This document shows positions 2,381 through 64,000 of a stretch of 64,000 nucleotides of DNA, piece after piece; the first letter of the stretch is position 1, and each line of letters begins with the position of its first letter. The stretch is taken from contig OZ251254.1 in the NCBI GenBank assembly GCA_965240325.2, positions 744,001 to 808,000 on the forward strand, given 5' to 3'. Source of the DNA: Rebecca billardiae RCC1528. Taxonomy: Eukaryota; Protista; Haptophyta. The notes beneath the pieces are model-generated. The model worked only from the letters and a program-made list of their open reading frames with translations. It was not told where the DNA came from and made no database searches. The position numbers and the translations under genes were made by a program.

Positions 2381-4691
<2,311 letters not shown>

Positions 4692-23790: not shown

Positions 23791-23821
<31 letters not shown>

Positions 23822-25633: not shown

Positions 25634-25717
25634 CTCTCTCTCTCGATCTCTCTCTCTCTCTCTCTCTCTCCCTCTCTCTCTCGATCTCTCTCTCTGTCTC
25701 TCTCTCTCTCTCTCTCT
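25634..25717. repeat. (CT)n microsatellite, followed by AT-rich tracts to about 25990
   Basis: Near-pure CT run. Confidence 0.9.
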
Positions 25718-39389: not shown

Positions 39390-40859
39390 TCACGCGCGCG
39401 GCGCGCTCGCCGGCCGGCGCGCCGCGCCGGCCGGCCTCGGCGGCAGCTCGCGCGGCTGAAAGCTGCCAAGCCCCGGCCGCTCCGGGTCTGGCGTGAAGCG
39501 CGCGTTGAACGAGCTGCGCGCGGCGCGCGGCGCGGGCGCGTACGCGGCCGGGCCGGGGCTGGCCTCGGCGGCTCGGCGCGCCCTCGCCGGGCCCGGCGCG
39601 TACCAGTCGACGGCGAAGAAGTTGGGCGCGCTCGCGCGGAGCAGCTCGTCGCGCGCCTCGCGCCCGCCGCCATGCCGCGCGCTCAGCGGCGCATGGCCGC
39701 CGCCGCCCCCGGCGCTGCCGATCGCGTCCACGCTGCTCGGCGGCGGCGGCTGCGGCTGCGGCGGGCGCGCGGCCTCGCGATCGGCCGCGGCGCCGCGGCG
39801 GTGTGGCGCGGGTGCGCCCGCGTGGTCGACCACGGCCCCGGCATGCGCCCACGCGCCCGGCGGCGCGCGCTCGGCCGGCGGCGCGCGCGGCGGCGCCCAC
39901 CCGCCGCCGCACGCTGCGGGCGCGCCGGGCTGCGCGCCGCCCCAGCCGGCGCAGGGCGCCCAGCCCGTGGCGGCGGCGGCCTCCGGCGGCGGCGGCGGCG
40001 GGTGGGGCGAGCGCACGGGTGGCGGCGCGCCGAGCGGCACGTACGCGTAGAGCACTGGGTACGGCGCCGCGCCGTGCAGCATCGGCGGCGGCGCGGGCCC
40101 GCTTGGCGCACACGCGCCGAGCGGCGGCGGCGCGGCGCCGAGCGCGCCGGCCGCGGCGGGATGCGGTGCAGGCTCCGGGCGCGCCGCCCAGCCGGGTGGC
40201 GAGGGCGGCCAGGGGGCGCCCCACAGCTCACGCTCGGGCGCGGCGGGCGGAGACGCGGCGCGGCGCGGCGGGCTCGGCGGCTCGGCGGCGCGGCGGCGCT
40301 CGGGCGGCGCCGCGGGCTCGGCGCGCGCGGCCGCGCCGCCCGCCGGCCTGGCGGCAGCGGCGGCGCTCGCGCCCACCGCCGCCTCGACGCTGCGCTCCAC
40401 GTGCGCCGTGAGCGCGGAGAGCGCGGACTCGAGACGCGCGCAGCGCGCGGTGAGCTCGTCGAGCTCGCGCTCGGCGGGGTGCGCGCTCGGTGCCTCGGCC
40501 GGCCTCGCGCCGGCTGATAGCTGCGGCGCGGACGCCGAGAGGCGCCGGCGCGCGGGCGGCGCGCCGGCGGGGCGCGCACGGGGGGCACGCGCGTCGGTCG
40601 CTCTCGCGGGCACGCGCGCGAGCTCGCGATCGCTCGCCGTCGCCCTCTCGTGTCGCGCCGGCGTGGCGTCCGTCTGGCGCGCGCGCGGCACGGCACTCGC
40701 ACCGCCCGCCGAGCGCGGCCGCGCCATGGGCATGCGGTGGGCGGCGCGCGCAGCGGCGCGCTCCTCCGCCTGCCAGTGTTCCACATCAATCTGCGCCGCC
40801 TCGGCTCGCCGTGCCGCGGGTGACCCCGGTGGGGGCCGCGTGAGCGGCCGCCGCTTCAT
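39390..40859 (-). CDS. Hypothetical Pro/Ala-rich protein with a coiled coil
   Basis: ERELDELTARCARLESALSALTAHVE heptads; ordered-looking C-terminal PNFFAVDWY; divergent from the RING gene. Confidence 0.55.
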   Translation of the reverse strand: MKRRPLTRPPPGSPAARRAEAAQIDVEHWQAEERAAARAAHRMPMARPRSAGGASAVPRARQTDATPARHERATASDRELARVPARATDARAPRARPAGAPPARRRLSASAPQLSAGARPAEAPSAHPAERELDELTARCARLESALSALTAHVERSVEAAVGASAAAAARPAGGAAARAEPAAPPERRRAAEPPSPPRRAASPPAAPERELWGAPWPPSPPGWAARPEPAPHPAAAGALGAAPPPLGACAPSGPAPPPMLHGAAPYPVLYAYVPLGAPPPVRSPHPPPPPPEAAAATGWAPCAGWGGAQPGAPAACGGGWAPPRAPPAERAPPGAWAHAGAVVDHAGAPAPHRRGAAADREAARPPQPQPPPPSSVDAIGSAGGGGGHAPLSARHGGGREARDELLRASAPNFFAVDWYAPGPARARRAAEASPGPAAYAPAPRAARSSFNARFTPDPERPGLGSFQPRELPPRPAGAARRPASAPRA

Positions 40860-41365
40860 CGCGCCGAGGGCTCGCGGAGCCGGGACTCGGGCCGCCACGC
40901 TGAGCAAGCCCGCGGCTTTTTCAAACGAACGCGAATTTCGAGTTTTGACTTTCGATTATTGCTGCCGGCCTGCCGCGATTTTTGTTTCGGGCGCCGTTGC
41001 CGATCGAGATTTCCCGGACCGGATCCGGCGCGAATACAATAGCTAACCCGGGCCCAATTGATGAATGATGATGCGAAAGTGGGTAATGCCGGTACCTGTA
41101 GGAGACGAAGGGTACCCGCTGAGACCACTTCCTCGTCGAGTCCGTCCGTGTGCGCACTCTGCAGTGCGTCGGCGCGCGCACATTGCTCTTGGACCTCCTG
41201 GCAGTCCTCCGCGCGCAGTGTCCTCCCCCGGCCCAGGTGGTGGCCAGTGCGCCGCCGGGGAGAAGCCGGCTCTGCCCTGGCGGTGGCGGTGCAGGCCTGT
41301 CCATCCAACCAAGCGGCGGCGCCAAACGTCGCGGAGGCGCCCCGCGCGCACGCCAGCCGGCGCCG

Positions 41366-43523
41366 ATGCCGACCCGACGCCGCGAGCCGGAGGACGACTC
41401 CGAGAGTGACCCGCCGCCGCCGCCCCAGCGCCGCGTCCGCTTCGCCACCGGCCAGATCCTCGTGCCGCTGCGCTCGCTGCGCGCGGCCGCGGCCGCGGCC
41501 GATGCGGGCGGCGCGAGCGGCGCGGCCGGGGCGGACGGCGCGCCCTCGCCCGCCTGGCGCGGCGGCTCCGAGTCGGAGCCCTCGCCCGGTGCCCCCTCCC
41601 CGCCCGACTTCTTCCCCGCGCTGCCCGAGGGCCTCGCGGGCCTGCCCCACTTCCACATCCAGCTGATGAGGGCGCCGCTGCCGCCGCTCTTTGGCGGCGG
41701 CGGGCTGGGCTCGCCCTCGGGCACGTCGGACGGCGAGCCGCCGAGCGCCTCGCCCTCGCCGCTCCCTCGCGCGCCGCGCGCCGCCGCGCGCGACGCCTCC
41801 GCCGGCACCGACGCGCCCGCCGACTCGCCCGGCGGCGGCGGCGGCGGCGCGGGCTCGCCGCCGCAGCCGGCCGGCATCCGCTTCCAGCACGGCAACGTGC
41901 GGATCGAGCTGCAGTTCGCGCCGAACGGGCTGAACTCGCAGCTCGAGTCGTTCCTCGCGATGCCCTCCGGCGCGCTCGCCGAGCTCACCGCCGCCGTCCT
42001 CGGCTCCGCCGCCGGCTCGCTCTTCCCAGAGCTGCCTCCGCGCGGCCTCACTGACGCGCAGTGCGAGCAGCTGGGCACGGCGACGTTCAAGGCGCCGCCG
42101 CTGAGCGTGGAGAGCGCGGCGGGGATGAGCGTGGCCGAGGTGCGCCGCCGCGCCGCAGCACCGCGCCGCAGCACCGCGTCTCAGCACCGCGCCCCGCGCC
42201 GCGCCCGCCGCGCCGCCGCCGCGCGCTTGCAGCTCAAGCGCCTGATGGCTGCCCATGGCGTGGACTGTCACGGCTGCATCGAGCGGCAGCACCTGCTGGA
42301 GAGGATCGAGCAGGAGGCGCGCGCGCGGCCGAGCGCGGCGGAGGACGAGCCGGCCGCTGCCCCCGGCTCTCCGCGCGCGTGCGTCTCAGAGCCGCACGAC
42401 TGCTCGGTGTGCATGAGCGCCTACAGGCACAACGAGTGCGCGCACCGCGCACGCAGCACGCAGCACGCAGCACGCAGCACGCAGCACGCAGCACGCAGCA
42501 CGCAGCACGCAGCACGCGCAGCACGCAGCACGCGCAGCACGGCCGGGGCGCGCGCGGGGCGCGGCCCGTGCGGACGCGCGTGGCTGACGCCAGGCGCCCT
42601 CCCGCCGCCGCCGCCGCCGCCGCCGCCTTGCGCAGGGTGGTCACCGTGTTGCCGTGCGCACCCTCGCACGCCTTCCACTCCGAGTGCATCCGCACGTGGC
42701 TCGGGCGGCACCGCACGTGCCCGCTGTGCCGCACGGACGTGTGCGCGCTGCTGCCCGGCGGAGCGGAGGGCGCGCCTGCGGCGGAGGGCGAGGGCGAGGG
42801 CCCGGCGGCCGGCGTGCTGCCGCCGCTGCCCGGGCTGCCGCCGCTCGACGCGCACGTTGCCCCACCGCCCGCGCCTTCACGCGAGAGGCCGCCCCGGCAG
42901 CCGCGGACGGCCGCGCAGCCGCCGTCGCTGGCGGGCGCCGAGCAGCCCGCGCCCGCGGCCGGCGTGCCCGCGGCCGGCGTCGGCCCGTGGCTGGGGGCGA
43001 TGCGCGCCGCGCCTCCCGAGGGGCCGGCGTCGCCGCAGGACGCCGAGGTAGCGCCGCCGGCCGAGCCGCCCGTGGCGCTGCGCACGCGCTCGACGCGCGC
43101 GCGCGCCGCAGCCACCGCCTCGCTGCCGCCGCGCTCGCAACCGGCGGCCGTGCCGGCGCCGGCCGCGCTGGGCGCGCCGAGCCGCGCGATCGGGCCGTTG
43201 CCGGTCGCGGCCGGCTCCGAGCTGGCGGCCGGCTGGGCGGGCGCGGCGGCGCCCGCGGCAGATCCGGTGCCCATCTCGGCGCTGCCGCCCGCCGAGCTTC
43301 GCGCCGCGGGCGGGCCCATGGCGCGCACGCCCGCGGCCGGGGCGCTCGCCTCCGGGTGCGCTGCGCGCGCGGCGGCCGGCGCGGCGCGCGTGCCCGCGGC
43401 GCGCCCTGGCCGACGCGCCGCCGCCCTTACTCGCGACCCCGCGCGCTCGCGCGCGCGCGCGCAGCGGCAGGGGCGATGCTGGCGCGCCCTCGCCGGCCGA
43501 CGGGCAGCAGCCCGCGCGCATGA
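41366..43523 (+). CDS. RING-H2 E3 ubiquitin ligase with a SAP/HeH-like helical domain; 3' end uncertain (43523 or 43896)
   Basis: Introns 42140-42232 and 42436-42635 give MSVAELKRLMAAHGVDCHGCIERQHLLERI and CSVC...EVVTVLPCAPSHAFHSECIRTWL...CPLC. Confidence 0.85.
42450..42540 (+). repeat. 7-bp tandem repeat (CACGCAG)n in RING gene intron 2
   Basis: About 12 units, degenerate at the right end. Confidence 0.9.
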
Positions 43524-44423
43524 CCGCGCCGCAGCGCATCGCGCGCCTGTTCGGCCGGCAGGCGCTGGCCGCCGCGCAGTGGCTGGCCGGCCGGCGCGAC
43601 GGCGCGCGCAGCGCCGGAGGTCAGGATGGCGGCGGCCGCGCGTGACGGATGACCCCACGCATGCGCGCGTCCGTCCATCTACGCACACAGACCCAGCGCC
43701 GTGGCCTCGAGCCGCCGCGCCTACATGGCAGACACGCGGCGTCACCCACGTGGACCGAACGGCCGAGCCGAATTGTGAACCGTCGGCGGATCACAAGCGC
43801 GCCGCCGCGGCGCCGCCGCGACTCGTCACCCCGCGGGCCGAAAGTATCGCCCTTTGCCAGTCGGTGATGACTCGTCGGAAGCCGATGGCCGTCTAAGCAG
43901 GATTTTCCCACTACCTAGTACCTTATTAAAAGCAGTTAAAACTTAAATTAGGTGGGTCCCTCCTGGCAACCCGGCTCTTGGAAAAGGCGTAACGTCCGTA
44001 TTTCATACGCAGGCCCCTGAGGGAGGGACCTGCGCAGGTTCCTGATACGGAAGGTCCCTAGTGTGACAGATTGTCGTCTGTCAGTGTCTGAGTGCACGAC
44101 GCGGTCTGAGCGCGCGCGCGCGCGGCGCGGCGCGCGCGCAGCGCGCGCCGACGCAGTGTCTGGTGAGCTGAGTTGCGTTGCTGGTGGAGCGGCGCCGCAG
44201 GCGCGCGCGGCGCGCAGAGCCGCGCGCTACACGCCAAAAAGACGCGCGAGGCCCTTACGATGCAAATGCTTCAATCCGCACCTCGATCCGAGTTGATGGT
44301 GAAGAGTTATGGCTGTTTTCGTGCGCGCTGGCCCGCAGGGGCGGCGGGCGCGGGGCTGCGTGATGTAGACCTCGATGCCGACATTGGCGCAAGCGACAAG
44401 CGCAGGGCGCTCACTGCGCAGGC

Positions 44424-48210: not shown

Positions 48211-50376
48211 AATTAAGGCACAACCGCACAAGAGTTGAGAGTGTGTGACTTGTACGCTGCGAGTCTGCGACCGTGCGACACAGTTACGGCATTACGCGCA
48301 ACCCGTTGGCCGTTACGCCCGTTAGGCCGTTACGCTGGCAGGTCCCCTGAGGCTGAGCGCCCACAGTGTACGCAGGTCCCTCAGCAGATTCCAAGAGCCG
48401 GCTGGCAACTGGGGCGATATTCTGGCGCACTCAGAATGACGTCCTAGATTTTGTCTCTCACCCAGAATCGACGCTATAAATGCGTCCCATCGGGGCGGAG
48501 CAAACGTTTCGGACCTCAAAACCTACTACTCCGCGTGCCGGCGTCGCGCGGCCGAGCCGGAAGGGCGCGCGCGCCGCGCCAGTAGTGTCACATAGAGATT
48601 TTGCGAAGCGTTACTTCATGGTTATGGTGGCTAGATGGCGACATGCGATCGGAATTACTTATTGACAACCGTTGACACCCGACCGAACCATTTTATGAAG
48701 CAAAGAGTGGGGCTCTATGCTGTGCGCTGAAGTACCTCCAACAAACTACAGCAAGATCAGAGCACATTACCCACTTCATATATAACCACTTACCCGTATA
48801 TAGTATGAGTGTTACCCACTTTATATTGACCGTGGATGCGGTTCACTATATATATTCAAATTCGTTCCGATATATGTGGGTACGTTTGTTGGGTCATCGA
48901 ATAGGCGCCGAGCGACGCGGACACAGGCCGAACCGCCGGGCCGCAACCGGACTGCCTGCGAGTGGCAGTGTTTGTGGCGGGCTGCGTGCCGAGGCACACA
49001 CCATCGCCCGCCACCGAGCATGCCACCGTCGTCACACGGGAGCCCTCCGCCGTCGAGGCTGGACTATCAGCCAACGCCACCGCCGGAGCTTGCCGCGTTC
49101 GGCGGCTTCCGTGCTCGTACTCCGCGCGTGTCACCGGTCGTCGTATGCCCACCCGCGTGAGGCCGCCACCAGTCCATGACTACCGCAGCTGCAGCCCATG
49201 CCGCCGACGATGCCTCCTACCATCTTCTCGCCAGGCAGCAATACGATAGGTTCACCGACGCTGCTGCTAGGCTGAGAGCACTCAGCCAGTTGGCCGGCGA
49301 GACGTCAGATGGTTGAGCTGCTGGCCTAGCCATCACGTTGCGGCTTCCGCTCGCTCAAGTACACCCAACGTGACGACGAGAACGTGCCGGGCAATCATCA
49401 GACATGCGTCTGAGGGGTCTACTACGCCTAGCCGTAGAGTTGCTGAGTACGAGTCTTCGCAGACCACAAGCGGAACGAGTGGGACCACCCGATGGCAGGA
49501 GCAACAGCGTGGGGTGGCACCCGCGCCTGTCAACGCGACCGCGTTCGTGTAGAATGGACCCATATCCTGCGATCACCCTCGAGCACCGCATACTATGCCC
49601 ACACTCGGCATAGGGAAGGATCGCTGAGCGCCTGCTGCCGCTGTCAAAGGCCCTGCTTATCTTCCTGGCGCTGGATCGTGCACACGGATGGCAAGTCGGC
49701 GTGCTCGCCGCACATCGCGGCGGCTTCTCAGCATCCCAAGTCCTCAGTGCACCCATCCTAGGCCTGCTGGTCGATGATTGGTACCAACCCCCACCAAACA
49801 CGCCCTCTCGGAAGTCGCCAATCGCTTACATGGCTCCCCGAGAGCCCGGGGCTGGCTGTCGTGCGTTCTCACGAACAGCTTGCGCACAGCCCAAATGTCA
49901 CCTTCACGGTGCGTTGAGCTGCTCAAGATGGCGGGAGCGTCAAGAGCATGCCCGTGCACGACACTGACCCATGCCTCCCGTCGCCTGACCCGCATGTGGC
50001 AAAAACTGACCCTGCTCGAAGGCACCGGTCGAACACCCGCCGATCGTTTCAAGTTGTCTGTACGCGTCTAGCCGGGCGAGAGTCAAACATGCGGGCACGT
50101 GCCAGGCGGGGGATGTGTGACCACGGATCCCATCCGTGAGCACGCGCAAAGCGCTGGAGCGCGCGATAGGTGTTGGCTGTGGTCTACCCGACACACGGCG
50201 GCTCGGTCGCGCTGGAGAGGCGCTCCGACATCGTCGGGAGCGTTCAGATCGGACCTCGGCCGGCGGCCCGGCGATTTTCCCGAGCCGCGCCCCGCGCGAA
50301 AAGAAATCAGGCCAGAAAACCCGGTAAATGTTTAAAAGACCGCTGGAAAATCGCCAGGGACCCACCTACTTAAAAA

Positions 50377-52145
50377 CTCAGCCCTGGCGGGCGGGGGGGT
50401 CGGCGGGCCGTGCCAGTGCTGTCGCAAATATTTCCCCAGCGGGTTCGCGCCTTTATTTATAGCGGTTTGACGGGCAGGATGACTACGAATAATAACAATG
50501 CGACATCATACCGAGATATGATTGTGAGCTACCCGACTCACTGACGAATAATAACGCGACAGATGACTCTGGTGCGAGCTCAGCGACAGTGTGATTGCGC
50601 GTGTATTCCTGCACCCACTGTGATGCTACTCGTCATCGTGCCGAGCCGCAAAGATGTCGGCCACCTTCTCCCACGCGTACACGCCCGCGCCCATGAGCAA
50701 GGTCCACACCCACGAGGGAACGTGCAGCACGCGGGGCGGGGCGAACAGCCCGTTGCTCCGCGCGAGTTCGCGTACGCGCTGCATGTGCCGCATCTCGACG
50801 GCGATGACGTAGTCGAGCGCCTCGCCGCCGACGAATCCGCCAGAGGAGATCGTGAGCATGTCCTCCTGCCGCCAGCTGAGATCGTGTGTTGCGAGAATGC
50901 CAATGTCCGCTCCGGGCACGATGGGCTCGGCGAAGGTCGCGTCGGCGTCGTGCACGGCCGCCACGCTGCGCAACAGCGCGTCCAGGTCCACGCGCTCGTC
51001 GGCGCTCGCCGTTCCGCGCGACAGGTCCGGCACTCGCACGTTCGGCGGTATTCAGGAGCTGTTGGCGGTGTACGCGCGCGCAGTGCGAGAGCGTGTGCCA
51101 CTCGCGATCAACGGTGGGCACGCGCTGCTCGAGCAGGCACACGAAGCGCAGCGCATGCGTCACCGGCTTCACGACGTTGGCCTCCTCCCGCAGCGCCCGT
51201 GCCATGGTGGAGGATGGCGCGGCGATCTTGCACGCTCGGCGACTCATTTCTCTGCGAACGAGCGCTTTGGCTCGGTCATAGCGCGCTGTCGCCTGCGTCG
51301 CCGACTCGCGAAGACGCGGTTCTTTCCACTTCTGCAACCCCGGGAGGTGCGTGCGGTGCGCGTCGTACGCCGCTTTGCGCTGCGCCTCCGTCGCATTGGC
51401 CACCGTCGACGCCATGCAGGCCGGGCGTGGGTCCTCGAGCGCCGAGCGATCTTTGGCCGCGAGCTCGCGAGCGCGAAAGATGATCGCTGGTCAGGAGTCC
51501 TGTGCGGTAGCAAACGGATTTGCATGCGCCCGACCTTGCCAACCGGGGCACGCGACAGTCCGGTGTGTGGATTCCGGTTATGGTGTTCAGAAGGCCGCGC
51601 CAAATCTTGCGTCGCGTGCGATGGCGCTTCCCGCCCGCGAGACGCCTCGTGATGAGGGCCGTTCCGCACCGAGCCCGACGCGCGACGGTGAATCGAGCGA
51701 GGCGGCCATCGTGCGCAGCGCTTGATGCTATGGCCGGTGCGAGCTTTCGACGTGCACGTCAGGCGAGGATCGCCCCAGGTCGCACGATCGTGTCGACGCG
51801 CCGAGCGTACCGCTCCAAACGCGTCGATTTAGCCCCCGTTCGACCTGCACGCGAGACGACGAGGGCAGCAATCGCGAATCGGGCGAAAACACCCCTCGGG
51901 AGTCTTCTCACGATGTCCGCTCCGGCGTTGGATTCGGCGCGCGCGGCCCACGCGCTCCGCGCCATCCAGGACTCTCTTTCGGCCGAGCGTCCCCAGTGGG
52001 AGCTGCGAGGGCGCCCGGTAGTGAGCGAAGCAACCCGGCAGTGAGCGAGGCGATTTTCTTTTCTTTGCGAGGCGATTTTCTTTTTTCCTTTTCTTTTTCT
52101 TATCCTTTTCCCGGGCACTACAAGGGGCGGACCTACGGCCCGCCA
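50377..52145 (-). mobile_element. Helitron2/Helentron-like copy A (deleted; partial Ulp1-like ORF)
   Basis: 5' TGGCGGGCCGTAGGTCCGCC hairpin; 3' ACGGCCCGCC, GCCC-GCCA-GGGC hairpin, then TGAG|TTT; homologous to 59468-63098. Confidence 0.8.
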
Positions 52146-53858
52146 TAACCTGTAGCGACAGCAGTCTGTACGTAAGGTCCAGGGAACAGGCTAAGCAGTA
52201 GCTCGATAGAGACCCTAGGTACCCCCCAACACGCGACTGGGGCGTAGTTGGCGCCCGAGCCCACCGGCGTCACCGCTGCTCCAGCGGCCGCCGATCGTCG
52301 CGACGCGCGCGCCGGTACGGCACGTCGTCACTCGCGCGTCGTGACCCGGTCGCGCGGACGAATAAAGGACCCCCATCATTGCTGCTGAAAATCGCAGTGA
52401 TCAGGCTCAGGAGGGCGGCCACGGCTTCCCTTTCGCCATCGAAGCCATCCGTGGCGTGCCTTAGGTATATACCAATGTACTCGCACAGCTCCGGCGCGGA
52501 GTTGATGCCATAAGCTGCTTGTCATGCCTGACGGTTGCGACACGCGTGTAGCTTGCGCCACTACTCACTCAGTGGCGCGGTGACTAAGAGCCTCTGATCT
52601 CTTGACCCAGGCGGCTCAGACCCGTGTCACCGACTGAGTCCCGCGACCGGGCCCGGCCGTGGAGTTTATACACGCAACAAGGGCTCTAGGAGTGAGTGGC
52701 TACTAGGCGGACTAGACACTAGTCACACTAGTGACTAGTGGCGCGGGACAGAGGCCTGAGAGCCTGTCTCGGATTGAATGAGTTAGTCGCGGCCTGCGCG
52801 GCGAGGCCGCCGGCGGGCGGGCGGAGCCGGATGTCAGAGTGACCGACGGCGACGGGAGCTTATTGATGACTCACACTGTCCCGCGTCCGCGGGCGGTTGG
52901 CCAGACCAGGCGGGCCGGACGTCGCCGCACGCTGGCATCGCCGGCACTAGCAACGGGCTTTCCGCTTTGTCGGAGCGGCCGGCGCGCGCAGGCGCTGCTG
53001 GCTGATGCTGGCTGGTGCGCGCGGTAATTAGTGACTGCGACGCGGTGCCAACTCCGCCCGAGAGCGATCCATCCGCCGTCAGCGGCACGCAGATGAAGTT
53101 GGTATGGCGGTGGTTGGTCTGACAAGCTTGGTGGCCGCGCGCATCACTGTTCCTCGGACTGCTCGGACAGGCGCGCTGCCTCAGAGTTCTGCGCTCGGGC
53201 GCGACGACGGCTCTGCCGGGCTGGCAGTGAGTCTGTCCGTGCAGTCTGGCTGTAGTCACTTACGACCGACCGCCGTCTCTGAGCTGGCTGGCGGCAGCAC
53301 TTGCGAGCGCCGCAGCACGCCGCGGCTGACCACGATCTTGTTCACCGCTCGACCGCCCATCTCGTCGCCAAAACCGTGCACTCATCCCTGCGGCGGTATC
53401 GAAATTCGTCGCCGGTTTAATTAAAGATCGTACCTGTACGACGCTGTCGTAATAGTGAACGTGACGACTGTGGATCCGACGGACGTCGGATGGCTGAGAT
53501 TAATAGCGAGTCGCGCAAGCTCTCTACTTCGTCGAACTGCGTCATCCTTGAAAACGTACAACGTTCGCATATGCGATGTGAATGATTGATGATGGGGTGA
53601 GAATTCGCGATCGGGGGCCCCAAGCGGAATCAACTAGGTGGGAAGATTCAATAGTTGGTACTGACGCGACGCAAACAGAGTTGGCCAATTCTCGAAACAA
53701 CAAACGTGCAAGTTTTCCCCGTGACCTACCCATGCGGGGAAGCGGGTGGCGATACGGCGGACGCTGATTGGCGGAGGTGGATGCGGAGGGAATTTTGCGA
53801 TTGCCCAATTATTGGGTTCTTGGGGTGCCAACGTCCAAGTCGGCCCTCCCCCACAACG

Positions 53859-55622
53859 ATGCCGCTTCGGCGCGCGTACCCGTTTTTCGCGGGAGAGCGA
53901 CAGACGCCTCCCCCGCCAAAGCTCTCGAGCGAACCGCGAGGTCGCCAGCTCCACGCCATGTCGCCACGGGTCGCCCGCCGGGTGAGCTCGGACGGGGGCG
54001 CGAGCACCGAGGTCGAGGCGGACCCGAGCCACCAGCCGAACCACGTCGCCGCCGCGCCGTCGGCGGAGGACGAGCGCATGCTGCGCAACGAGAAGAAGCG
54101 CGTCGGCGCGCTGCCGGCGCACAAGTCCAAGCGCCAGTGCGCGCGGCCAACCTCGGAGGTGGAGGCACTGCGTGCCGAGCTCGAGCTCTCGCGAGAGGAG
54201 CTGCGACGCGAGCGCCTCAACGCGACCCAGACCCGCTGCGAGCTCGCTGCCGCGCGCCGTGCCGAGACGCGCGCGAGCCCAGCAGTCGCCGGAGCGCACA
54301 AGCCCGACCCGTGCCGCGCGCAGGCACCCACGGCCACGACGGCGGTGGCGTCCGGCCACGCCGCGACGCAGGGCGCGGCCCTCCTCGCCGCACGCCTGGC
54401 GGCGCTCTCGCACTTCGTGTGCTGCTTCGAGTACGACGACAGCTCGCACGACGCGGACGGCGAGTTGTACGCCGAGCCTGACGCGCAGCAGCGCCGCGCG
54501 CTCGCAGCCGGGGTGCCAGCACCCGCCGGCGCCGCGGCAGGCGGCGGTGGCGGCGGCGGCGGCGGCGGCGTTGGCGGAGGCGCGGTGGGCGTCGCGGGCC
54601 CCGCCGCGCGTGCGCCTGACTGGGCGCCGGTCACGGACCCGGACGCGCTCGCGGCGCTGACCGCGCTTGTGATTGGCGCGCAGAGCGCCGTGTACTACAC
54701 GCTCGGCGCGCACGCGTACGAGGCGCGCGCCGACGAGCGCGCCGCCGGCGCGGGTGTGCTCTGGCCACCGCCGCTGCGGCAGACCAACCTGACGTTCGGC
54801 ACGACGCGCGCGCTGCGCGTGCGGCTGGCGCCCAACCCGGCGCGCACCGGCTCGCTCGTGCCGCTGGCGGCGCCCAGCGCGCACAGCGACGCCGTCGCGC
54901 CGCCGCTGCCGCCATCGCCGCCGCCCGTCGCGCCGCCGCTGCCACCGCACGCGCCCGGCGCCGCGTACGAGCGGCTGATCCGCGCGGTGTGCGACGCGCC
55001 CCGCGCGGCGGAGCACCCGGGCGCCGGCCTGCCCGCGGACGCGCAGCTGCCGTGCGTCGAGCTGCCGCTCTCGCTGCTCGAGGAGCTCGTGCGCGCTGCG
55101 CCGCTCGAGCAGGCCGTGCTGCCGTGCGCGGCGCTCGCTGCGCTCGGCAACGCGTTCCGGCCTGGGCTCGCGGCGCGCGGGTACAGCGCGCGCGGCTGCC
55201 GGCTGTGGCTCAAGCCCGGGCTCTTCCGGCAGTGGCTCGCGCTGCTCGAGAAGCTGCGCGCGCGCGGGCACGAGCGCGCGCGGCTGTACGTGTGCTTCCA
55301 CGGCTCGAGCGCGGCCGCGTACGACGCGATCGAGGCGGACCCGATGGGCTTCGACTGCTCGCGCCAGACGCACGGCGCGCAGTGGGGCCACGGCGTCTAC
55401 TTTGGCGACGCGGTGCTCACGGAGCGCTTCAACGCCGAGCGGCGCGGCACGTGCGCCGCCGCGCTCGTGCTCGCGGACGAGGTCGACCAGAACAGCGGCC
55501 GCTGGGCGGCGAGCGCGTACGCGCGCACCGGGCCGAGCGCGGCGCTCAGCACCTTCCAGGGCGGGCTGGTCGCGCACGACCACCGGCACATCCTGCCGCT
55601 CGGCAAGCTCGTGCCCCTCTAA
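53859..55622 (+). CDS. Coiled-coil protein with a C-terminal PARP-like ADP-ribosyltransferase domain (start 53859 or 53958)
   Basis: YVCFHGS...AI...GFD...GAQWGHGVYFG and terminal LVAHD..HILP follow the PARP/ARTD catalytic pattern; EVEALRAELELSREELRRERL coiled coil. Confidence 0.72.
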   Translation: MPLRRAYPFFAGERQTPPPPKLSSEPRGRQLHAMSPRVARRVSSDGGASTEVEADPSHQPNHVAAAPSAEDERMLRNEKKRVGALPAHKSKRQCARPTSEVEALRAELELSREELRRERLNATQTRCELAAARRAETRASPAVAGAHKPDPCRAQAPTATTAVASGHAATQGAALLAARLAALSHFVCCFEYDDSSHDADGELYAEPDAQQRRALAAGVPAPAGAAAGGGGGGGGGGVGGGAVGVAGPAARAPDWAPVTDPDALAALTALVIGAQSAVYYTLGAHAYEARADERAAGAGVLWPPPLRQTNLTFGTTRALRVRLAPNPARTGSLVPLAAPSAHSDAVAPPLPPSPPPVAPPLPPHAPGAAYERLIRAVCDAPRAAEHPGAGLPADAQLPCVELPLSLLEELVRAAPLEQAVLPCAALAALGNAFRPGLAARGYSARGCRLWLKPGLFRQWLALLEKLRARGHERARLYVCFHGSSAAAYDAIEADPMGFDCSRQTHGAQWGHGVYFGDAVLTERFNAERRGTCAAALVLADEVDQNSGRWAASAYARTGPSAALSTFQGGLVAHDHRHILPLGKLVPL

Positions 55623-55724
55623 CCGGCCGGTGCCGCCACCGCAGGCGAGCCGGTGGGCCGGGCGCCCGTACAGTCGGCTTCCGAGCACCGAGCGCGTGGC
55701 AGTGGCGCCGGGGGATATACCATA

Positions 55725-57239
55725 TGGCGGGCCGTAGGTCCGCCCCTTGTAGTGCCCGGGAAAAAGATAAGAAAAAGAAAATAAAGAAAAAAGAAATTCG
55801 CCTCGCCAAGAAAAGAAAATCGCTTCGCTCACTACCGGGCGCCCTCGCAGCTCCCACTGGGGACGCTCGGCCGAAAACATCTTCCGCATGGCGCGGAGCG
55901 CATGGGCCGCGCGCGCCAAATCCAACGCCGGCGCGGACATCGTGAGAGGATTCCCTAAGGGGGTTTTCGCCCGATTCGCGATTGCTGCCCTCGTCGTCTC
56001 GCGTGCAGGTCGAACGGGGCCCAAATCGACCCGTTTGATGCGGTACGCTCGGCGCGTCGACACGATCGTGCGACTTGGGGCGATCCTCGCCCGACGTGCA
56101 CGTCGAACGCTCGCACCGGCCATAGCATCAGACGCTGCGCACGATGGCCGCCTCGCGCGATCCACCGCCGCGCGTCGAGCTCGGTGCAGAAAGGCCCTCA
56201 TCACGAGGTGTCTCGCGGGCGGGAAGCGCCATCGCACGCACGGGACGCAAGATTTGGCGCGGCCTTCTGAACTCGATCGCCGGAATCCGCGCACCGGACT
56301 CAGTCCTCGCTCGCGGTCCGGTCCCTCAGCCGAAGCCCACGTCCGGCCTGCATGGCGTCGACGGTGACCGATGCGACGGAAGCGCAGCGCCACGGCGTAC
56401 GACGCGCAGCGGACGCACCTCCCGGGTCTGTCGCCGTGGTAGCAACCGCGTCATCGCGAGTTGGCGACCCTCGCCGCAGCGCGACACAGACAAGCCCGTG
56501 ATGCCATCCGCAGAGAGATGAATCGTCGAGCATGCAACATCGCCGCGCCATCCTCGTCCATGGCGCAGGCGCTGCGGGACGAGGCGGAAGTCGTCACGCC
56601 GGTGACGGATGCGCTGCGATTCGTGTGCCCGCGTGAGCAGCGCTTGCCCACTCTCGATCGCGAGTGGCACACGCTGTCGCTGTGCGCACAGCTCCTCGTG
56701 CCGCCGAGCACACGAGCGCCAGACCTGTCGAAGATGCGAAGAGCGACGACCGCGTGAACGTCAACGCGCTCGTGCTCAGCGTGGCGGCCGTGTACGACGT
56801 CAACGCGACCTGCGCCGAGCCCATCATGCCTGGAGCGGACATCGGCAAGCATCCTCGCGACGACCGCTCTCGGCTGGCAGGAGGACATGCACATGATCTA
56901 CTCTGGCGGCTTCGTCGGCGGCGAGGCGCTCGATTACGCCATCGCGGTCGACATGCGGCACATACAGCGCGTACCCGCGCTCGCGCGGAGCAACGGGCTA
57001 CCCGCCCCGCCCCGCGTGCTGCACATTCCCTCGTGGGTGTGGGGCCTCGCTGATGCGCATAAGAGTACAGACTGAGACGTGTGACACGTCGGGGAGCCAA
57101 CTTCACGTGTCACTGGTCCTTGCACTCGACTGTCCGTCACCCACGGCCACGAGCGAATGTGGAAGGACGCGAACCCGCAGAGGATACATTGCGACAGCAC
57201 TGGCACGGCCCGCCGACCCCCCCGCCCGCCAGGGCACAG
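55725..57239 (+). mobile_element. Helitron2/Helentron-like copy B (more diverged, deleted)
   Basis: Same 5' and 3' terminal structures; ends GGGCACAG|TTT; Ulp1 N-terminal part broken by stops and frameshifts. Confidence 0.8.
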
Positions 57240-57258
57240 TTTATATAGTATCATTCAA

Positions 57259-59458
57259 TGGCGGGCCGTAGGTCCGCCCCTTGTAGTGCCCGGGAAAAAG
57301 ATAAGAAAAAAGAAAAAGAAAAAAGAAAATCGCCTCGCAAAGAAAAGAAAATCGCCTCCCTCACTGCCGGGTCGCTTCGCTCACTACCGGGCGCCCTCGC
57401 AGCTCCCACTGGAGACGCTCGGCCGAAAACATCAGACGCATGGCGCGGAGCGCGTGGGCGGCGCACGCCAAATCCAACGCCGGCGGGGACATCGTGAGAA
57501 GACTCCCGAGGGGGGTTTTCGCCCGATTCGCGATTGCTGCCCTCGTCGTCTCGCGTGCAGGTCGAACGGGGGCCAAAGTCGACCAGTTTGGAAGTACGCT
57601 CGGCGCGTCGACACGATCGTGCGACCTGGGGCGGTCCTCGCCCGACTTGCACGTCGAGCGCTCGCACGAGCCATAGTATTAAGCGCTGCGCACGACAACC
57701 ACCTCGCGCGATCCACCGTCGCGCGTCGGGCTCGGTGCGGAAAGGCCCTCATCACGAGGCGTCTCGCGGGCGGGAAGCGCCATCGCACGCGAAGCAAGCT
57801 TTGGCGCGGCCTTCTGAACTCGATCGCCGGAAACGGCGCACCGGACTGTCGCGTGCCACAACTTCTCAAAGCCGGGCGCATGCAAATCCGTTTGCTACAG
57901 CTGTACCAGTTCCCGGCCAAGCCGAAGGGCCGGCCCTTGTCCCGGCGATCATCTTTCGCGATCGCGGCCAAAGATCGCTCTCAGCTCGGCGCTCGCGGTC
58001 CCTCACAGCCGAAAGCCCACGTCCGGCCTTCAGCATGGCGTCGACGGTGACCAATGCGACGGAGGCGCAGCGCAAAGCGGCGTACGAGGCGCAGCGAACG
58101 CAGCTGCCGTGTCTGTCGCCGTGGCAGGAACCGCGTCTTGGCGAGTCGGCGGCCCTCGTCGCACAGCGCTACAGTATGACCGATCCCAGAGGCGCATCCG
58201 CCACGAGCTGAAACGCCGAGCGTGCAACATTGTCGCCCCATCCTCCACCATGTCACGAGCGCTGCGGGACGAGGCCGACGTCGTGAAGTCAGTGGCACAT
58301 GCGCTGCGCTTCCTGTGCCTGCTCGAGCAGCGCGTGCCCACCCTCGATCGCGAGTGGCACACGCTCTCGCACTGCGCGCGCGCGCACCGCCCGGACAGCT
58401 CCTGATACCGCCGAACGTGCGGGTGCCGGACCTGTCGCGCGAAGCGGCGAGCGCCGACGAGCGCTTGGACCTGGACGCGTTGTTGCGCAGCGTGGCGGCC
58501 GTGCACGACGCCGACGCGACCTTCGCCGAGCCCATCGTGCCCGGAGCGGACATCGGCATCCTCGCGACACACGATTTCAGCTGGCGGCAGGAGGAGATGC
58601 TGTCGCGTTATCCGTACAGCGCCGAGATTACGCGGGCTCTGCGATCCATGGCGAGCTTGTGACTTGGGGCGGCGACTCGCGCAGCAGTTTGGCCGCTCGA
58701 TGTACGAGTTCGCGTCCGGAGGAGTACGCGCGGCATGCAGGCTGCCGCCAGTGGGTACTGGCTACGAGTCCAAGCCCGCATGACCCTCACATCTCGAGTC
58801 TGCACCCTGCCGTTCGCTGTGTCAAAGCAGCCGCAACGAACAAGCGTCGTTGAGTGTCGATTGGCTGCGCGAGCGCGGTCTCGCCCCGCCCAACCCAAGT
58901 GTGTGCGAGTGAGCATGTGTCTTGAGCATGTGGCGTGCGTTGACGCCATCCGCGACGGCCGACATGGCCATGGAGCGCCCGCATCACTCGCCTGCACCGT
59001 GCCCTTCATAGCCTACGGGAAGCTCCGCAAATCTGTTGATTTTGCTCTTTTTTGCCCGTTGGAGTCATCTTCTTCGCTTGGTTCTTAGTGCACTGAAAAC
59101 CCTATTTTAAAGAATGAATTTTAGCGCGCGCGGGCGGCAGCGGAGCGCAACCAACCCGCGGAGTCGGGAGTGTCCGAAGGAGATCTCCGAGACGCTAAAT
59201 GTGAGCCAATTCTTGTCGCCTGCGCACCAACCTTGCGCCCGGGACCGACCATTAAAGTTGAGTGAGTCTCCCGTGAGTCTCCCGGCGCTGTACGGTTATT
59301 ATTCGTCAGTGAGTCAGGTAGCTCACCATCATCTGTGTGTCGCATTGTTATTCGTCATCCTGCCCGTCAAACCGCTAAATAAAAGGCGCGAACCCGCTGG
59401 GGAAATATTGCGACAGCACTGGCACGGCCCGCCGACCCCCCCGCCCGCCAGGGCAGAG
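57259..59458 (+). mobile_element. Helitron2/Helentron-like copy C (deleted; contains a MITE)
   Basis: Same termini; ends GGGCAGAG|TTT; shares its deletion junction GAGATGCTGTCGCGTTATTATTCG with copy E. Confidence 0.82.
58612..59295. mobile_element. 684-bp piggyBac-like MITE with TTAT TSD
   Basis: 13-bp TIR CCGTACAGCGCCG; TTAT duplicated (58608-58611 / 59296-59299); the empty site is visible in copy E (about 63255-63275). Confidence 0.88.
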
Positions 59459-60202
59459 TTTAATATATGGCGGGCCGTAGGTCCGCCCCTTGTAGTGCCC
59501 GGGAAAAAGATAAGAAAAATAAAAGGAAAAAAGAAAATCGCCTCGCAGAGAAAAGAAAATCGCCTCGCTCACTGCCGGGTCGCTTCGCTCACTACCGGGC
59601 GCCCTCGCAGCTCCCACTGGAGACGCTCGGCCGAAAACATCAGACGGATGGCGCGGAGCGCATGGGCCGCGCGCGCCAAATCCAACGCCGGCGCGGACAT
59701 CGTGAGAGGACTCCCGAGGGGGGTTTTCGCCCGATTCGCGATTGCTGCCCTCGTCGTCTCGCGTGCAGGTCGAACGGGGGCCAAAGTCGACGCGTTTGGA
59801 GGCACACTCGGCGCGTCGACACGATCGTGCGACCTGGGGCGGTCCTCGCCCGACTTGCACGTTGAGCGCTTGCACGGGCCATAGCATCAAGCGCTGCGCA
59901 CGACAACCACCTCGCGCGATCCACCGTCGCGCGTCGGGCTCGGTGCGGAAACGCATTCATCACGAGGTGTCTCGCGGGCGGGAAGCGCCATCGCACGCGA
60001 CGCAAGCTTTGGCGCGGCCTTCTGAACACCATAACCGGAATGCACACACCGGACTGTCGTCGCGTGCCCCTGTTGGCAAGGTCGGGCGCATGCAAATCCG
60101 TTTGCTACGGTCGGTGGTGTTCCAGAGCAAGCGCTCGTCTTTCGCGCTCGCGAGCTCGCGGCCAAAGATCGCTCGGCGCTCGGGGGCCCACGTCCGGCCT
60201 GC

Positions 60203-62556
60203 ATGGCGTCGACGGTGACCAATGCGACGGAGGGGCAGCGCAAAGCGGCGTACGACGCGCACCGCACCTCCCGGGTTTGCAGCCGTGGCAGGAACCGCGT
60301 CGTGGCGAGTCGGCGGCCCTCGTCGCAGCGCGCTATCACAAATCCCAGGTGCGCATCTGCGACGAGCTGAAACGCCGAGCGTGCAAGATCGCCGCGCCAT
60401 CCTGGTCCATGGCACGGGCGCTGCGGGACGAGGCCGACGTCGTGAAGCCAGTGGCACATGCGCTGCGCTTCGTGTGCCTGCTCGAGCAGCGCGTGCCCAC
60501 CGTCGATCGCGAGTGGCACACGCTCTCGCACTGCGCGCGCGTACAACGCCAACAGCTCCTGATACCGCCGAACGTGCGTGTGCCGGACCTGTCGCGCGGA
60601 GCGGCGAGCGCCGACGAGCGCTTGGACCTGGACGCGCTGTTGCGCAGCGTGGCGGCCGTGCACGACGCCGACGCGACCTTCGCCGAGCCCATCGTGCCCG
60701 GAGAGGACATTGGCATCCTCGCGACACACGATCTCAGCTGGCGCCACGAGGAAATGCTCACGATCTCCTCTGGCGGATTCGTCGGCGGCGAGGCGCTCGA
60801 CTACGTCATCGCGGTCGAGATGCGGCACATGCAGCGCGTACGCGAGCTCGCGCGAAGCCACGGGCTGCCCGTCCCGCCCCGCGTGCTGCACGTTCCCTCG
60901 TGGGTGTGGACCTTGCTCATGGGCGCGGGCGTGTACGCGTGGGAGAAGGTGGCCGACATCTTTGCGCTCTTCGACCTGAACGAGTACGACGTGCTCTCCT
61001 TCATCATCAACCAGGACGGCAACCACTGGGCGCAGGGGGTCGTGGACTTGCGCCGCGAGATCATCGAGTACCGCGAGCCCCTGGGCGGAGGCGACATGAT
61101 CGAGTTCGTCTCGAACGTGCAGCTGCTGCTCGCCGACGCGCACGAGGCCCAGCAGCAGCGCACACCGCGCACATGCGCGCAGCGCGACCCCTCCACGTGG
61201 CGCGTGTTCGAGCGCGCGCGCGAGCTGCCGTTGACGATGGCGCGGCAGGTGCCGGGCACGGTGCACTGCGCGGTGCTCGTCTTCGCGTACGTCCTCGACA
61301 CCGTGCGAGGCCACGCGCCGTGCGGCATGAGCCAGCCCTTCGACCCCAAGGAGTGGCGGCGCTTGATGCTACTCACGGCGCTCACGGGCAAGTCTTTTGC
61401 CGACGTGGCAGGGACGTGCGCGCAGCCCGACGCGGTGGCGACGTGTGTCAAAGGCGCACGCGAGTCGGCGCGCTCGCATCCGTCGCCGCATATCGCGCAA
61501 CGCGCCTCCGACCCCGCGCTCGCCGCGGAGACCAACGCCGCGGACGCGACAGCGAGCCCAGCCGCCCCCATCGCCGGGCTCCCAGCCGTTGCCGACGCCA
61601 TGCGCGTGGACATGGAGGAGTCGTGCGACGCGCTCGATGACGCCGTCGCGTCGAACCGCGGCACGGCGCCGCCGCGGCACTCGCTCGCAGGCGCCAGCGC
61701 ACGGCTCGGCGCCATCCGCCCCGCATCCCACGCCGAGCGGCGCAGCGCCCGTGGGCGCCTTGCAGCCGGGCGCGCCGCCGCGCGCCGACGACCACGTCGC
61801 CGAGGAGCCGCTGAGCGACGACCAGGCCGACGCCACCGGCGTGACCAGCATGGCGGCGCCGCCACACTCGCGCGTGCTGCGCTCGCAGACGTCGGCGCGC
61901 GACTCGGCGCTTTCCAGACCGCACCCCACGCCGAGCGGCGCCGCCCCCTTGGCCGCCTCGCAGCCCGGCGCGCCGCCGCCCACCGACGGCCACCTGGTCG
62001 GCGACCCGATGAGCGACGACGAGGCCGACGCCACCGGCGCGACGGGCATCCCGCCGCCGACTCCGGACTTCGACCCGTCGCAGCACGTGCAGGGGATGAT
62101 CCACGCGAACACGCACTCGTGCGCAGCGATGCTCACCTTCAGCCGCGGCGAGGAGAAGCACGCCGTTGGCATGTGCACCGTGTGCCTGCAGGTGCGCAAC
62201 ATTGGCCACGACTCCGGCGCCGATCTGAGCGCACGCCCAGGGTTCAACACGGTCATCGCCGCGCCGTGGGACTGCCAGCCGCGCGCGCAGCGCTATCCGG
62301 GCGCGCCCAAGTCGCGCGTGATGTGCAAGATCTGCATGGCGCTGAACACCAGCGCGGCGCGGCGCCGCACGCCGGACAACAACGAGCTCAAGGCACACCC
62401 CTACTCGGGCTTCTCCAGCCCCGCCGGCGACATGTCCAGCGACCTCCACCACAACAACATGCACTTCCTGCCCGTGTCCGAGTACCTGCTGCCGTGCACC
62501 GAGTTCGAGCTGCAGCTGCTGGGCAAGTACGCGTGCGCCGCCACCTACGATTTTAA
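60203..62556 (+). pseudogene. Ulp1/SENP-like (C48) cysteine protease followed by a Cys-rich DUF6570-like region; frameshifted and truncated
   Basis: IINQDGNHWAQGVVDL...IEYREPL...RQVPGTVHCAVLV gives His, Glu (for Asp), Gln, Cys; then CTVC...CKIC...NNMHFLPVSEYLLPCTEFELQLLG. Frameshifts near 60265 (4-bp deletion relative to copy A) and about 61700. Confidence 0.72.
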
Positions 62557-62626
62557 TATAAAGACCGGGCCCATTACACTGATTTCAAATAATATAAAGA
62601 CCGGGCCCATTACACTGATTTCAAAT
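62555..62626. repeat. 36-bp tandem duplication at the ORF truncation point
   Basis: AATATAAAGACCGGGCCCATTACACTGATTTCAAAT x2. Confidence 0.9.
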
Positions 62627-63098
62627 AATAATAACCGTTAGAAATCAACATAGAGAGACAGAGAGACAGAGAGACAGAAATCGGTAGGATGCACTGACTT
62701 CCAGACGACCTGAACAAATAATGAATCAGGACATCACACTCCGCCACAACTTGAACTGTTTTCGTGTTTAGCTCCAAGGACAAACCGTCACCGTCAGGCG
62801 CACACGGGCACGCCGCCGTCGCACGCCAATCAGTTGGCAGTGCGTGCGCGCAGTCGAAGGCTCGGCACGATGACGAGTAGCACAGTGGGTGCAGGAATAC
62901 ACGCGCAATCACACTGTCGCTGAGCTCGCACCAGAGTCATCTGTCGCGTTATTATTCGTCAGTGAGTCGGGTAGCTCACAATCATCTTGGTATGATGTCG
63001 CATTGTTATTCGTAGTCATCCTGCCCGTCAAACCGCTATAAATAAAAGGCGCGAACCCGCTGGGGAAATATTGCGACAGCACTGGCACGGCCCGCCGA

Positions 63099-64000
63099 AC
63101 TCTGCCCTGGCGGGCGGGGGGGGTCGGCGGGCCGTGCCAGTGCTGTCGCAATATTTCCCCAGCGGGTTCGCGCCTTTTATTTAGCGGTTTGACGGGCAGG
63201 ATGACGAATAACAATGCGACACACAGATGATGGTGAGCTACGACCTGACTCACTGACGAATAATAACGCGACAGCATCTCCTCCTGCCGCCAGCTGAGAT
63301 CGTGTGTCGCGAGGATGCCGATGTCCGCTCCGGGCACGATGGGCTCGGCGAAGGTCGCGTCGGCGTCGTGCACGGCCGCCACGCTGCGCAACAACGCGTC
63401 CAGGTCCAAGCGCTCGTCGGCGCTCGCCGCTTCGCGCGACAGGTCCGGCACCCACACGTTCGGCGGTATCAGGAGCTGTCGGCGGTGCGCGCGCGCGCAG
63501 TGCGAGAGCGTGTGCCACTCGCGATCGAGGGTGGGCACGCGCTGCTCGAGCAGGCACAGGAAGCGCAGGGCATGTGCCACTGGCTTCACGACGTCGGCCT
63601 CGTCCCGCAGCGCTCGTGACATGGTGGAGGATGGGGCGACAATGTTGCACGCTCGGCGTTTCAGCTCGTGGCGGATGCGCCTCTGGGATCGGTCATACTG
63701 TAGCGCTGTGCGACGAGGGCCGCCGACTCGCCAAGACGCGGTTCCTGCCACGGCGACAGACACGGCAGCTGCGTTCGCTGCGCCTCGTACGCCGCTTTGC
63801 GCTGCGCCTCCGTCGCATTGGTCACCGTCGACGCCATGCTTAGAAGGCCGGACGTGGGCTTTCGGCTGTGAGGGACCGCGAGCGCCGAGCGATCTTTGGC
63901 CGCGATCGCGAAAGATGATCGCCGGGACAAGGGCCGGCCCTTCCCGTTCGGCTTGGCCGGGAACTGGTACAGCTGTAGCAAACGGATTTGCATGCGCCCG
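63099..64000 (-). mobile_element. Helitron2/Helentron-like copy E (tail-to-tail with D; runs off the window)
   Basis: Reverse complement of copy C without the MITE; 3' end GGGCAGAG|TT. Confidence 0.82.

Follow-up and report, generated by a model that had tools for sequence, protein, structure and literature searches.

What kind of mobile element left the five related copies found at 50375-64000 of the 64,000-nucleotide stretch of Rebecca billardiae RCC1528 DNA analysed here (the window; G000:C38:744001-808000), and is the Ulp1-like protease region in one of these copies a part of its machinery? The assembly is GC-rich, with 72 Mb in 41 contigs, and the window itself has a very high GC content of 60–85%. 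We conclude that the region very probably holds a nest of dead copies, all with internal deletions, from a Helitron2-type (HLE2) transposon family in which an autonomous element of 9,405 bp encodes a single protein of 2,709 residues.

The preliminary description of this DNA, made from the letters alone, had recognised five copies of one family that share a 5' terminus and a 3' inverted repeat, and this description holds. A repeat search within the window gave five blocks that are alike over long direct and inverted stretches, and BLAST against a full-length copy from elsewhere in the genome placed five family copies in the region. An exact 20-mer, TGGCGGGCCGTAGGTCCGCC, occurs four times in the window (52145 minus, 55725 plus, 57259 plus and 59468 plus), against 0.02 occurrences expected from shuffled sequences. 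The copies are listed below, with the parts of the full-length element that each retains according to BLAST.

52145..50375, minus strand: copy A, positions 1-1509 joined to 9139-9405 (identity 92.5% and 94.9%), non-autonomous
55725-57241, plus strand: copy B, positions 1-589, 725-1467, ~100 nt of filler and 9330-9405, non-autonomous
57259-59460, plus strand: copy C, positions 1-1301, 693 nt of unrelated filler (58602-59294) and 9229-9405
59468-63098, plus strand: copy D, positions 1-3099, filler (62546-62699) and 8965-9382 (identity 95.3%)
63098..64000, minus strand, continuing to 64604 past the window: copy E, of the same deletion type as C, with 1301 joined to 9222

All five are internal-deletion derivatives that keep the first 1.3–3.1 kb and the last 76–440 bp of the element, with B keeping the least of its 3' end. 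Copy B, at 80–90% identity to the full-length copy, is the oldest of them. Copies B, C and D are stacked head-to-tail with spacers of 19 and 9 nt. Copy D is without the last 23 nt of the 3' end, where it adjoins the 3' end of E, and the 5' end of E (64604) is cut at position 11 and adjoins the 3' end of a further copy. Positions 1-3099 of D cover the 5' untranslated region, the Ulp1 region, a linker, a Cys-rich region and the start of DUF6570, while its deletion removes everything between positions 3099 and 8965. The preliminary description had the family carrying Ulp1; within the window this is so in copy D only, where the loss of 4 nt at 60263 and of 11 nt at 61682 shifts the frame. None of the window copies codes for a working protein, and all are broken.

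The intact form of the family was found outside the window. A protein search with the Cys-rich segment of D identified four full-length 9.4-kb copies, with open frames of 2736–2873 codons that run from Ulp1 through a helicase. The copy at C1:3183744-3193148 spans 9,405 bp and consists of a 741-nt leader and one open reading frame (ORF; L001:1486-9612), of 2,709 residues when counted from the first Met. The order of its domains is a Ulp1/SENP-like protease, a duplicated low-complexity linker, a Cys-rich zinc-finger-like segment, DUF6570, a HUH Rep nuclease with two catalytic tyrosines (Y2) and a superfamily 1B (SF1B) helicase. Pfam, run on the whole frame, reported AAA_30, AAA_19, a weak Peptidase_C48 and nothing else. 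The frame gave no Pfam match to a DDE or other transposase domain or to a reverse transcriptase; the preliminary description had named a DDE transposase or reverse transcriptase in full-length copies as incompatible with the rolling-circle, Helitron-like family that it proposed. That proposal is borne out by the full-length copies found genome-wide, with their Y2 HUH Rep and SF1B helicase.

The identity of the Rep region was established through its relatives. A phmmer search with residues 637-1827 against 1.84 billion representatives returned 138 relatives, 13 of them below 1e-30. In the Rep-region alignment 30 of 49 relatives match Helitron_like_N (PF14214) and 10 of 49 match DUF6570. Among the long homologues, DUF6570, Helitron_like_N and PIF1 (PF05970) occur together in P0018, P0055 and P0089; DUF6570 is joined by Helitron_like_N in P0003 and P0006 and by PIF1 in P0008. 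Word-indexed homologue searches with the Rep region, the Ulp1 region and the Ulp1 domain alone were blank, a weak negative given their length window and word index, and a metagenome contig search with one alignment gave no confirmed related locus. The family alignment of 50 sequences defines Rep motif I as F-x-T/S-x-S-C-A-E-x-x-W, motif II as R-x-E-F-A-x-x-R-G-x-I-H-x-H and motif III as Y-x-x-x-Y-x-x-K. All three are intact in the element, as FVFFSRACAEYWW (FVFFS..AE..W), IHSH and YVCDYAFK, at these positions of the protein:

Rep residues: motif I at 1176; His1283/His1285; Tyr1563/Tyr1567

An AlphaFold2 model of the Rep region, built on the homologue alignment (mean pLDDT of 81.8), was compared exhaustively with 48,161 PDB chains using VIA-align. 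The best match was 7lcc_A (Z of 10.9, 272 residues, root-mean-square deviation of 3.8), followed by the HUH Rep 2x3g (Z of 6.5), against an unrelated background at Z of ~5. By ESM features, 27 of the 30 nearest clusters to the Rep region are Helitron_like_N. The element has a HUH Rep with motifs I, II and III and two tyrosines, as do Helitron-like elements. A Pif1/RecD-like SF1B helicase, another mark of such elements, is fused C-terminal to Rep, as indicated by matches to AAA_30 (37.3 bits, cut-off 27) and AAA_19 (28.2 bits, cut-off 25.1) and by the Walker A (at 2148), Walker B, motif V and motif VI that can be read in the sequence.

Placement within the Helitron-like elements was guided by DUF6570, which HELIANO (2024) proposed as a marker of the HLE2 clade (PMC11417382). 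Residues 756-857, scanned alone, match DUF6570 (PF20209) with E of 1.1e-4 and 23.1 bits, just below the 24.3 cut-off, and 18 of 22 aligned homologues match it, the best at 2.1e-14. The clade marker thus lies upstream of Rep. The Cys-rich region had been equated with DUF6570; the Cys-rich stretch itself proved to be a zinc-finger-like segment directly upstream, and DUF6570 follows it. The 2,873-codon frame has no Pfam match to an apurinic/apyrimidinic (AP) endonuclease (Exo_endo_phos), and the ORF stops ~115 residues past helicase motif VI. Since no AP-endonuclease follows the helicase, Helentron in the strict sense is ruled out, and the earlier designation Helitron2/Helentron narrows to Helitron2-type HLE2.

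The termini agree with this placement. Their features in the window are as follows.

59468..59487, plus strand (also 55725-55744 plus, 57259-57278 plus, 52126-52145 minus): 5' terminal hairpin and left inverted repeat, from the exact 20-mer count and DNA fold
59424..59433, plus strand (also 57205 plus, 63087 plus, 50402 minus, 63126 minus): right subterminal inverted repeat ACGGCCCGCC, 25-34 nt from the ..AGAG end
59443..59458, plus strand: 3' mini stem-loop GCCC-GCCA-GGGC then AGAG, invariant in 20/20 fetched copies

The 5' terminus forms an 8-bp hairpin of −7.6 kcal/mol (z of −2.1, DNA fold against shuffles). Its 10-nt left repeat, GGCGGGCCGT, pairs with the right repeat ACGGCCCGCC, and the pair is invariant in all copies. 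As an exact 10-mer ACGGCCCGCC occurs nine times in the window, always between 50.4 and 63.2 kb; five occurrences are the 3' subterminal repeats (50402 minus, 57205 plus, 59424 plus, 63087 plus and 63126 minus) and four are the complement within 5' termini. With one mismatch allowed there are 23 occurrences in the window against 27.7 expected, no excess over chance, so that the exact clustered copies alone count. The 3' ends of A, B, C and E read ACGGCCCGCC, GACCCCCCC, GCCC-GCCA-GGGC, (A/T)(C/G)AG and then TT(T), which gives an end motif of ..GCCCGCCAGGGC(A/T)(C/G)AG with TT(T) beyond. Within the 3' stem, GCCCGCCA is a second inverted copy of the 5' terminal TGGCGGGC. The family has the short inverted repeats and the stem-loop after the right repeat that characterise HLE2, here a 10-nt repeat and a 4-bp stem.

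These ends are widespread in the genome. Queries of 333 nt from the 5' end and 179 nt from the 3' end gave ~400 candidate matches each, the best 40 at 94–100% identity, and the end-matching candidates genome-wide number at least 394–417. We compared the termini on other contigs, at twenty 5' ends and the same number of 3' ends. In all twenty 5' flanks ..AT stands directly before GGCGGG, and all twenty 3' ends contain an identical ACGGCCCGCC and finish in ..GCCAGGGCAGAG, TTT and then A/T-rich sequence, often (TA)n. Several of the 5' ends lie 6–28 nt downstream of the 3' end of another copy; the B-C-D stack is therefore typical of the family. No consistent flanking direct repeat, and so no target-site duplication, was seen in six copies with both flanks read, as had been noted for the window, and insertion is orientation-specific, both as in Helitron-like elements.

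The A that had been reported before the 5' end precedes TGG in the four window copies that have this end and in 25 of 26 copies examined genome-wide. The C10 full-length copy has G instead, and in two copies with partial 5' duplications, the C1 copy and L026, the repeated unit starts with T. From these observations the element probably begins with the T; insertion would then more likely be between A and T in A/T-rich or (TA)n DNA. The C1 duplication (L001 near 733-760) reads ..GGCGGGCCGT followed by TGGCGGGCCGTAGG.., and that of L026 (G000:C10:484115-484324) reads ..GTAGGTC followed by TGGCGGGCCG..; such partial tandem duplications of the 5' terminus may reflect slippage or renewed initiation at the nick site. 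On the most economical reading, the element would start at TGGCGGG.. and end in ..GAGT(T), and would have gone in ahead of a T, in A/T-rich or (TA)n DNA, without duplicating its target. Beside the window there are also two odd junctions, at which a 3' end (..AGAGTT, with only two T) is joined to an internal site of another copy, in one case position 11 of E and in the other the reverse complement of the right inverted repeat of D, which resembles a 5' terminus.

By analogy with Helraiser, the reconstructed bat Helitron (HLE1; PDB 7LCC), we propose that Rep nicks one strand at the 5' terminus (TGGCGGG.., 8-bp hairpin) and that the helicase peels the nicked strand 5' to 3'. The subterminal inverted copy of the 5' terminus and the short GCCC/GGGC stem would serve as the recognition signals of the 3' end, and the released single-stranded circle would be pasted, without target duplication, into A/T-rich DNA. 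Often the target would be (TA)n or the A/T run that follows directly on the 3' end of a copy already in place, and this preference would explain the head-to-tail stack of B, C and D. Deleted copies, which keep both termini, would be mobilised in trans.

We next consider the protease. The following features of copy D correspond to the N-terminal part of the protein.

60607..61449, plus strand: Ulp1/C48 domain (PF02902, E of 6.5e-5, 23.3 bits)
His 61024-61026, Glu 61075-61077, Gln 61246-61248, Cys 61267-61269, plus strand: catalytic codons, located in the sequence
61682..62059, plus strand: two tandem units of ~198 nt each that code for the duplicated Pro/Ala-rich linker (repeat family D8, 81% identity)
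62114..62548, plus strand: Cys-rich zinc-finger-like segment (from 62114) and first ~30 DUF6570 residues (from 62453), truncated by the internal deletion of D

The duplicated linker is also present in the full-length copy. Both copy D (23.3 bits) and the full-length copy (21.6 bits) exceed the PF02902 gathering score of 20.7, and SENP1 chains match the protease domain at E of 0.003. Aligned with SENP1, the domain has the same catalytic His (His276) and Cys (Cys357) and the same oxyanion Gln (Gln350). The His-acid spacing in the element is 17 residues and its Gln-Cys spacing is 7; in Ulp1/SENP1 these spacings are 17 and 6. By ESM features 27 of 30 neighbours of the protease are C48 clusters. 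Conventional C48 genes exist separately in the genome and are ~21% identical to the domain of the element. We therefore assign the domain, by sequence, to the CE-clan Ulp1/SENP-like (C48) cysteine proteases. It lies at the N-terminus of the protein in all four full-length copies, in agreement with the deSUMOylase-like domain predicted at the start of the protein, and is fused in frame with the Rep-helicase portion (RepHel) in each of them.

Selection on this protein was estimated by assigning substitutions on a three-lineage star of the full-length copies C1, C15 and C16.

Whole ORF: 66 synonymous and 53 non-synonymous substitutions, omega ~0.27, p of 2e-12
Ulp1 domain: 11 synonymous and 12 non-synonymous, omega 0.36, p of 0.013, on only 23 substitutions
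Low-complexity linker: omega 0.68, not significant
Rep: omega 0.22
Helicase: omega 0.19

The ORF is under purifying selection, and the omega of the Ulp1 domain indicates, on a small count, that the protease was maintained while the autonomous lineage diversified. Most probably the putative protease would act by taking SUMO or some other ubiquitin-like modifier off the transposase, or off chromatin or replication factors of the host; alternatively, it may process the giant protein itself. That it counters SUMO-dependent silencing, as suggested in the preliminary description, is a guess.

The family also appears to have been active recently. Over 9.3 kb the C1 and C10 copies share 99.9% identity, but their flanks are unrelated, which indicates a very recent transposition. 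The C10 copy contains a 1,955-bp foreign insertion at element position ~9283 (ends AACTCACTCGGTAGACC ... GGTTATACAACC) with AT on both sides, for which the C1 copy represents the matching empty site. Elsewhere, non-autonomous copies form tandem arrays with exact periods of 1,538 bp and 2,127 bp (G000:C5:2847744-2852332 and G000:C3:4502592-4507340), which suggests an expansion of element plus spacer rather than repeated insertion.

Comparison with known systems indicates what is shared and what is particular to this family. In the published description of HLE2 elements, DUF6570 and RepHel are accompanied by short inverted repeats, by a stem-loop that follows the right repeat at the 3' end and by numerous non-autonomous copies (PMC11417382). 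Our family resembles Helitron2/HLE2 elements, such as FoHeli of Fusarium and the HELIANO families (PMC11417382), in its Y2 HUH RepHel with SF1B helicase and upstream DUF6570, in the short inverted repeat shared between the 5' terminus and the subterminal 3' region and then followed by a stem-loop, in having neither target-site duplication nor AP endonuclease, and in its many non-autonomous derivatives with both ends. It differs from them in its ~2,700-residue protein, in a Rep and helicase too divergent for Pfam Helitron_like_N and PIF1, in a 10-nt rather than 12–16-nt repeat, in a strong 5' hairpin and weak 3' stem, in its flanks (A before T..TT, then T) and in the Ulp1 domain fused in frame at the N-terminus. 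The in-frame fusion, the protein size and the divergence of RepHel from the Pfam models are particular to this element. Helraiser, the best structural match for Rep and the mechanistic model for rolling-circle transposition, shares the motif order, the two catalytic tyrosines and the C-terminal Pif1-like helicase. However, it is 9% identical, its ends are 5'-TC and CTRR-3' with a target between A and T, and it is without a terminal inverted repeat, DUF6570 or protease. A ubiquitin (Ub) or ubiquitin-like (Ubl) protease also travels with the transposase in OTU-, UCH- and C48-carrying Helitron-like elements, KI-MULE and Ginger1 (PMC11417382; PMC2836005). The C48 domains reported by HELIANO lie in separate ORFs, whereas here protease and RepHel share one ORF, and MULE and Ginger use DDE transposases. 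As Ulp1 in Helitron-like elements was already known (PMC11417382), it is clear that the kind of element is not new and that the family is.

A number of results weigh against the Helitron2-type assignment. The protein of the element has no direct match to Pfam Helitron_like_N or PIF1, while three recognisable Helitron proteins of the same genome do match both; BLASTP, phmmer and a one-round profile against these three gave marginal HUH-motif matches only. Foldseek with the Rep model returned nothing at E ≤ 0.001, a PDB sequence search with the Rep and helicase regions gave no match, and the Rep identity rests on transitive homology and one structural match. The inverted repeat, at 10 nt, is below the 12–16 nt quoted for HLE2. 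Hairpins had been described at both ends, and that at the 5' end stands; the 3' stem has 4 bp only and folds no better than shuffles, so that it is supported by its invariance across copies (20/20) and not energetically. In the protease the catalytic Asp of SENP1 aligns with Glu293. Its AlphaFold model is poor (pLDDT of 45.6, 7-row alignment), and the top 20 Foldseek matches of this model, all Ulp1/SENP with E from 1.6e-3, lend weak support only. C48 was found in none of the relatives scanned, most of which are fragmentary metagenomic gene models, and the Ulp1-RepHel fusion may be lineage-specific.

No empty site was found either, at the flank of copy A or at the C10 palindrome site. The flank of A is part of a repeat of low copy number, and the other copies of this repeat begin where A is inserted. 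A 30-nt palindrome, of which one intact occurrence exists elsewhere, is split in the middle by the C10 full-length copy; the pre-insertion sequence there cannot be deduced because only the 16-nt palindrome arms match. The flanks read ..A then T-GGCGGG in 25 of 26 copies and ..GAG then TTT in all regular copies; because termini and targets share T's and no empty site was found, the cut positions carry an uncertainty of 1–2 nt, and these flanks neither confirm nor contradict the insertion between two T's that is a feature of HLE2. The perfect 28-30-nt palindrome, (C)AAAGGACCATCAAA continuing into TTTGATGGTCCTTT(G), is intact at G000:C30:485640-485667; its arms flank the C10 insertion, and half of the palindrome also precedes another copy (L018).

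Several of these results would suit a different origin. Replitrons are a eukaryotic HUH-Rep group of algae, probably including haptophytes, that transposes by copy-and-paste and has hairpin-like or palindromic ends (PMC10288648), and the algal host, the form of the ends and the missing direct match to Helitron_like_N fit a Replitron or other helicase-less HUH element. Their Rep, however, has one catalytic Tyr (Y1) and no helicase, whereas this element has a YxxxY motif with a fused SF1B helicase, a best structural match in Helraiser and homologues with Helitron_like_N and PIF1, and we consider such an origin extremely improbable. The same very low probability attaches to a cut-and-paste transposon of MULE, Zisupton or Ginger type whose inverted repeats would be ordinary terminal ones. 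Ulp1 is classic in MULE and Ginger1 transposases (PMC2836005) and short inverted repeats are present here, but neither a DDE domain nor one of another transposase was detected in the 9.4-kb element by Pfam, the right repeat lies subterminally, 25 nt from the end, the six copies show no target-site duplication, and the ends are orientation-specific with head-to-tail stacking.

The Helitron2-type assignment could also hold with a Ulp1 domain that is a passively captured host gene fragment without a role in transposition. Many host domains have been captured by Helitron-like elements, and HELIANO places Peptidase_C48 among 20 domains stably found in them, in the group that is usually in separate ORFs (PMC11417382). 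The absence of C48 from the relatives examined, the replacement of the catalytic Asp by Glu and the hundreds of derivatives mobilised without the Ulp1 domain point in the same direction. Set against this, the domain is in frame with RepHel in 4/4 full-length copies, its His, Gln and Cys are kept with a Ulp1-like His-acid spacing (17; Gln-Cys 7 vs 6), and its omega is 0.36 compared with 0.68 in the adjacent linker, although the estimate comes from only 23 substitutions. Other CE-clan proteases, adenain among them, moreover normally have Glu as the acid residue. On balance we judge passive capture unlikely. It is possible, if somewhat doubtful, that the in-frame Ulp1 is a working, selected part of the transposase, and that rolling-circle transposons repeatedly recruit Ub/Ubl proteases (OTU, UCH and here C48) so as to free the transposase, or the replication or silencing factors of the host where insertion takes place, of SUMO or ubiquitin. 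A separate observation concerns the metagenomic relative P0002, which is 40% identical in the Rep region and whose N-terminal 250 residues contain an OTU-like GDGSCFIYA...NHY at the place of Ulp1. An OTU protease was suspected there by eye from the GDGSCF motif and was rejected, as Pfam and PDB searches gave no support.

Other features of the locus lie in and around the nest. It continues 3' of the window with at least eight further family fragments in the next 11 kb (64001-75234; G000:C38:808001-820000), among them a second A-type and a second D-type copy. The filler at the deletion of copy D contains two tandem 33-bp units (ATATAAAGACCGGGCCCATTACACTGATTTCAA..) and then (GAGAGACA)n-like sequence (62553-62620, plus strand), and the second D-type copy, outside the window, carries the same filler. 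Between copies A and B, at 53655-55622 on the plus strand, a 655-codon open frame has a weak match to the PARP catalytic domain (PF00644, E of 0.047, under the cut-off) with an H-G-S...Y-F-G pattern, and may be either a gene of the host or cargo that a different element carries. Further upstream, 18000-26000, 28000-32000 and 38000-44000 have 75–85% GC, a strong AT skew and weak BLAST matches to Ala/Pro-rich parts of the ORF; these blocks are probably low-complexity coding sequence.

The element leaves the understanding of how Helitrons move unchanged. Its transposase escapes the standard Pfam Helitron models, so that annotators based on hidden Markov models will miss such elements, and the homologue set found here could extend the Helitron profiles. 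The fusion under purifying selection adds a case to the recurring, unexplained association of Ubl proteases with transposases, and the in-frame Ulp1-RepHel protein offers a construct for testing the role of the protease. The family is well delimited, with four intact 9.4-kb copies and hundreds of deletion derivatives in a GC-rich algal host. If the protease is indeed a working part of the transposase, this lineage would provide a naturally occurring and recently active case for testing the dependence of a transposase on a Ub/Ubl protease.

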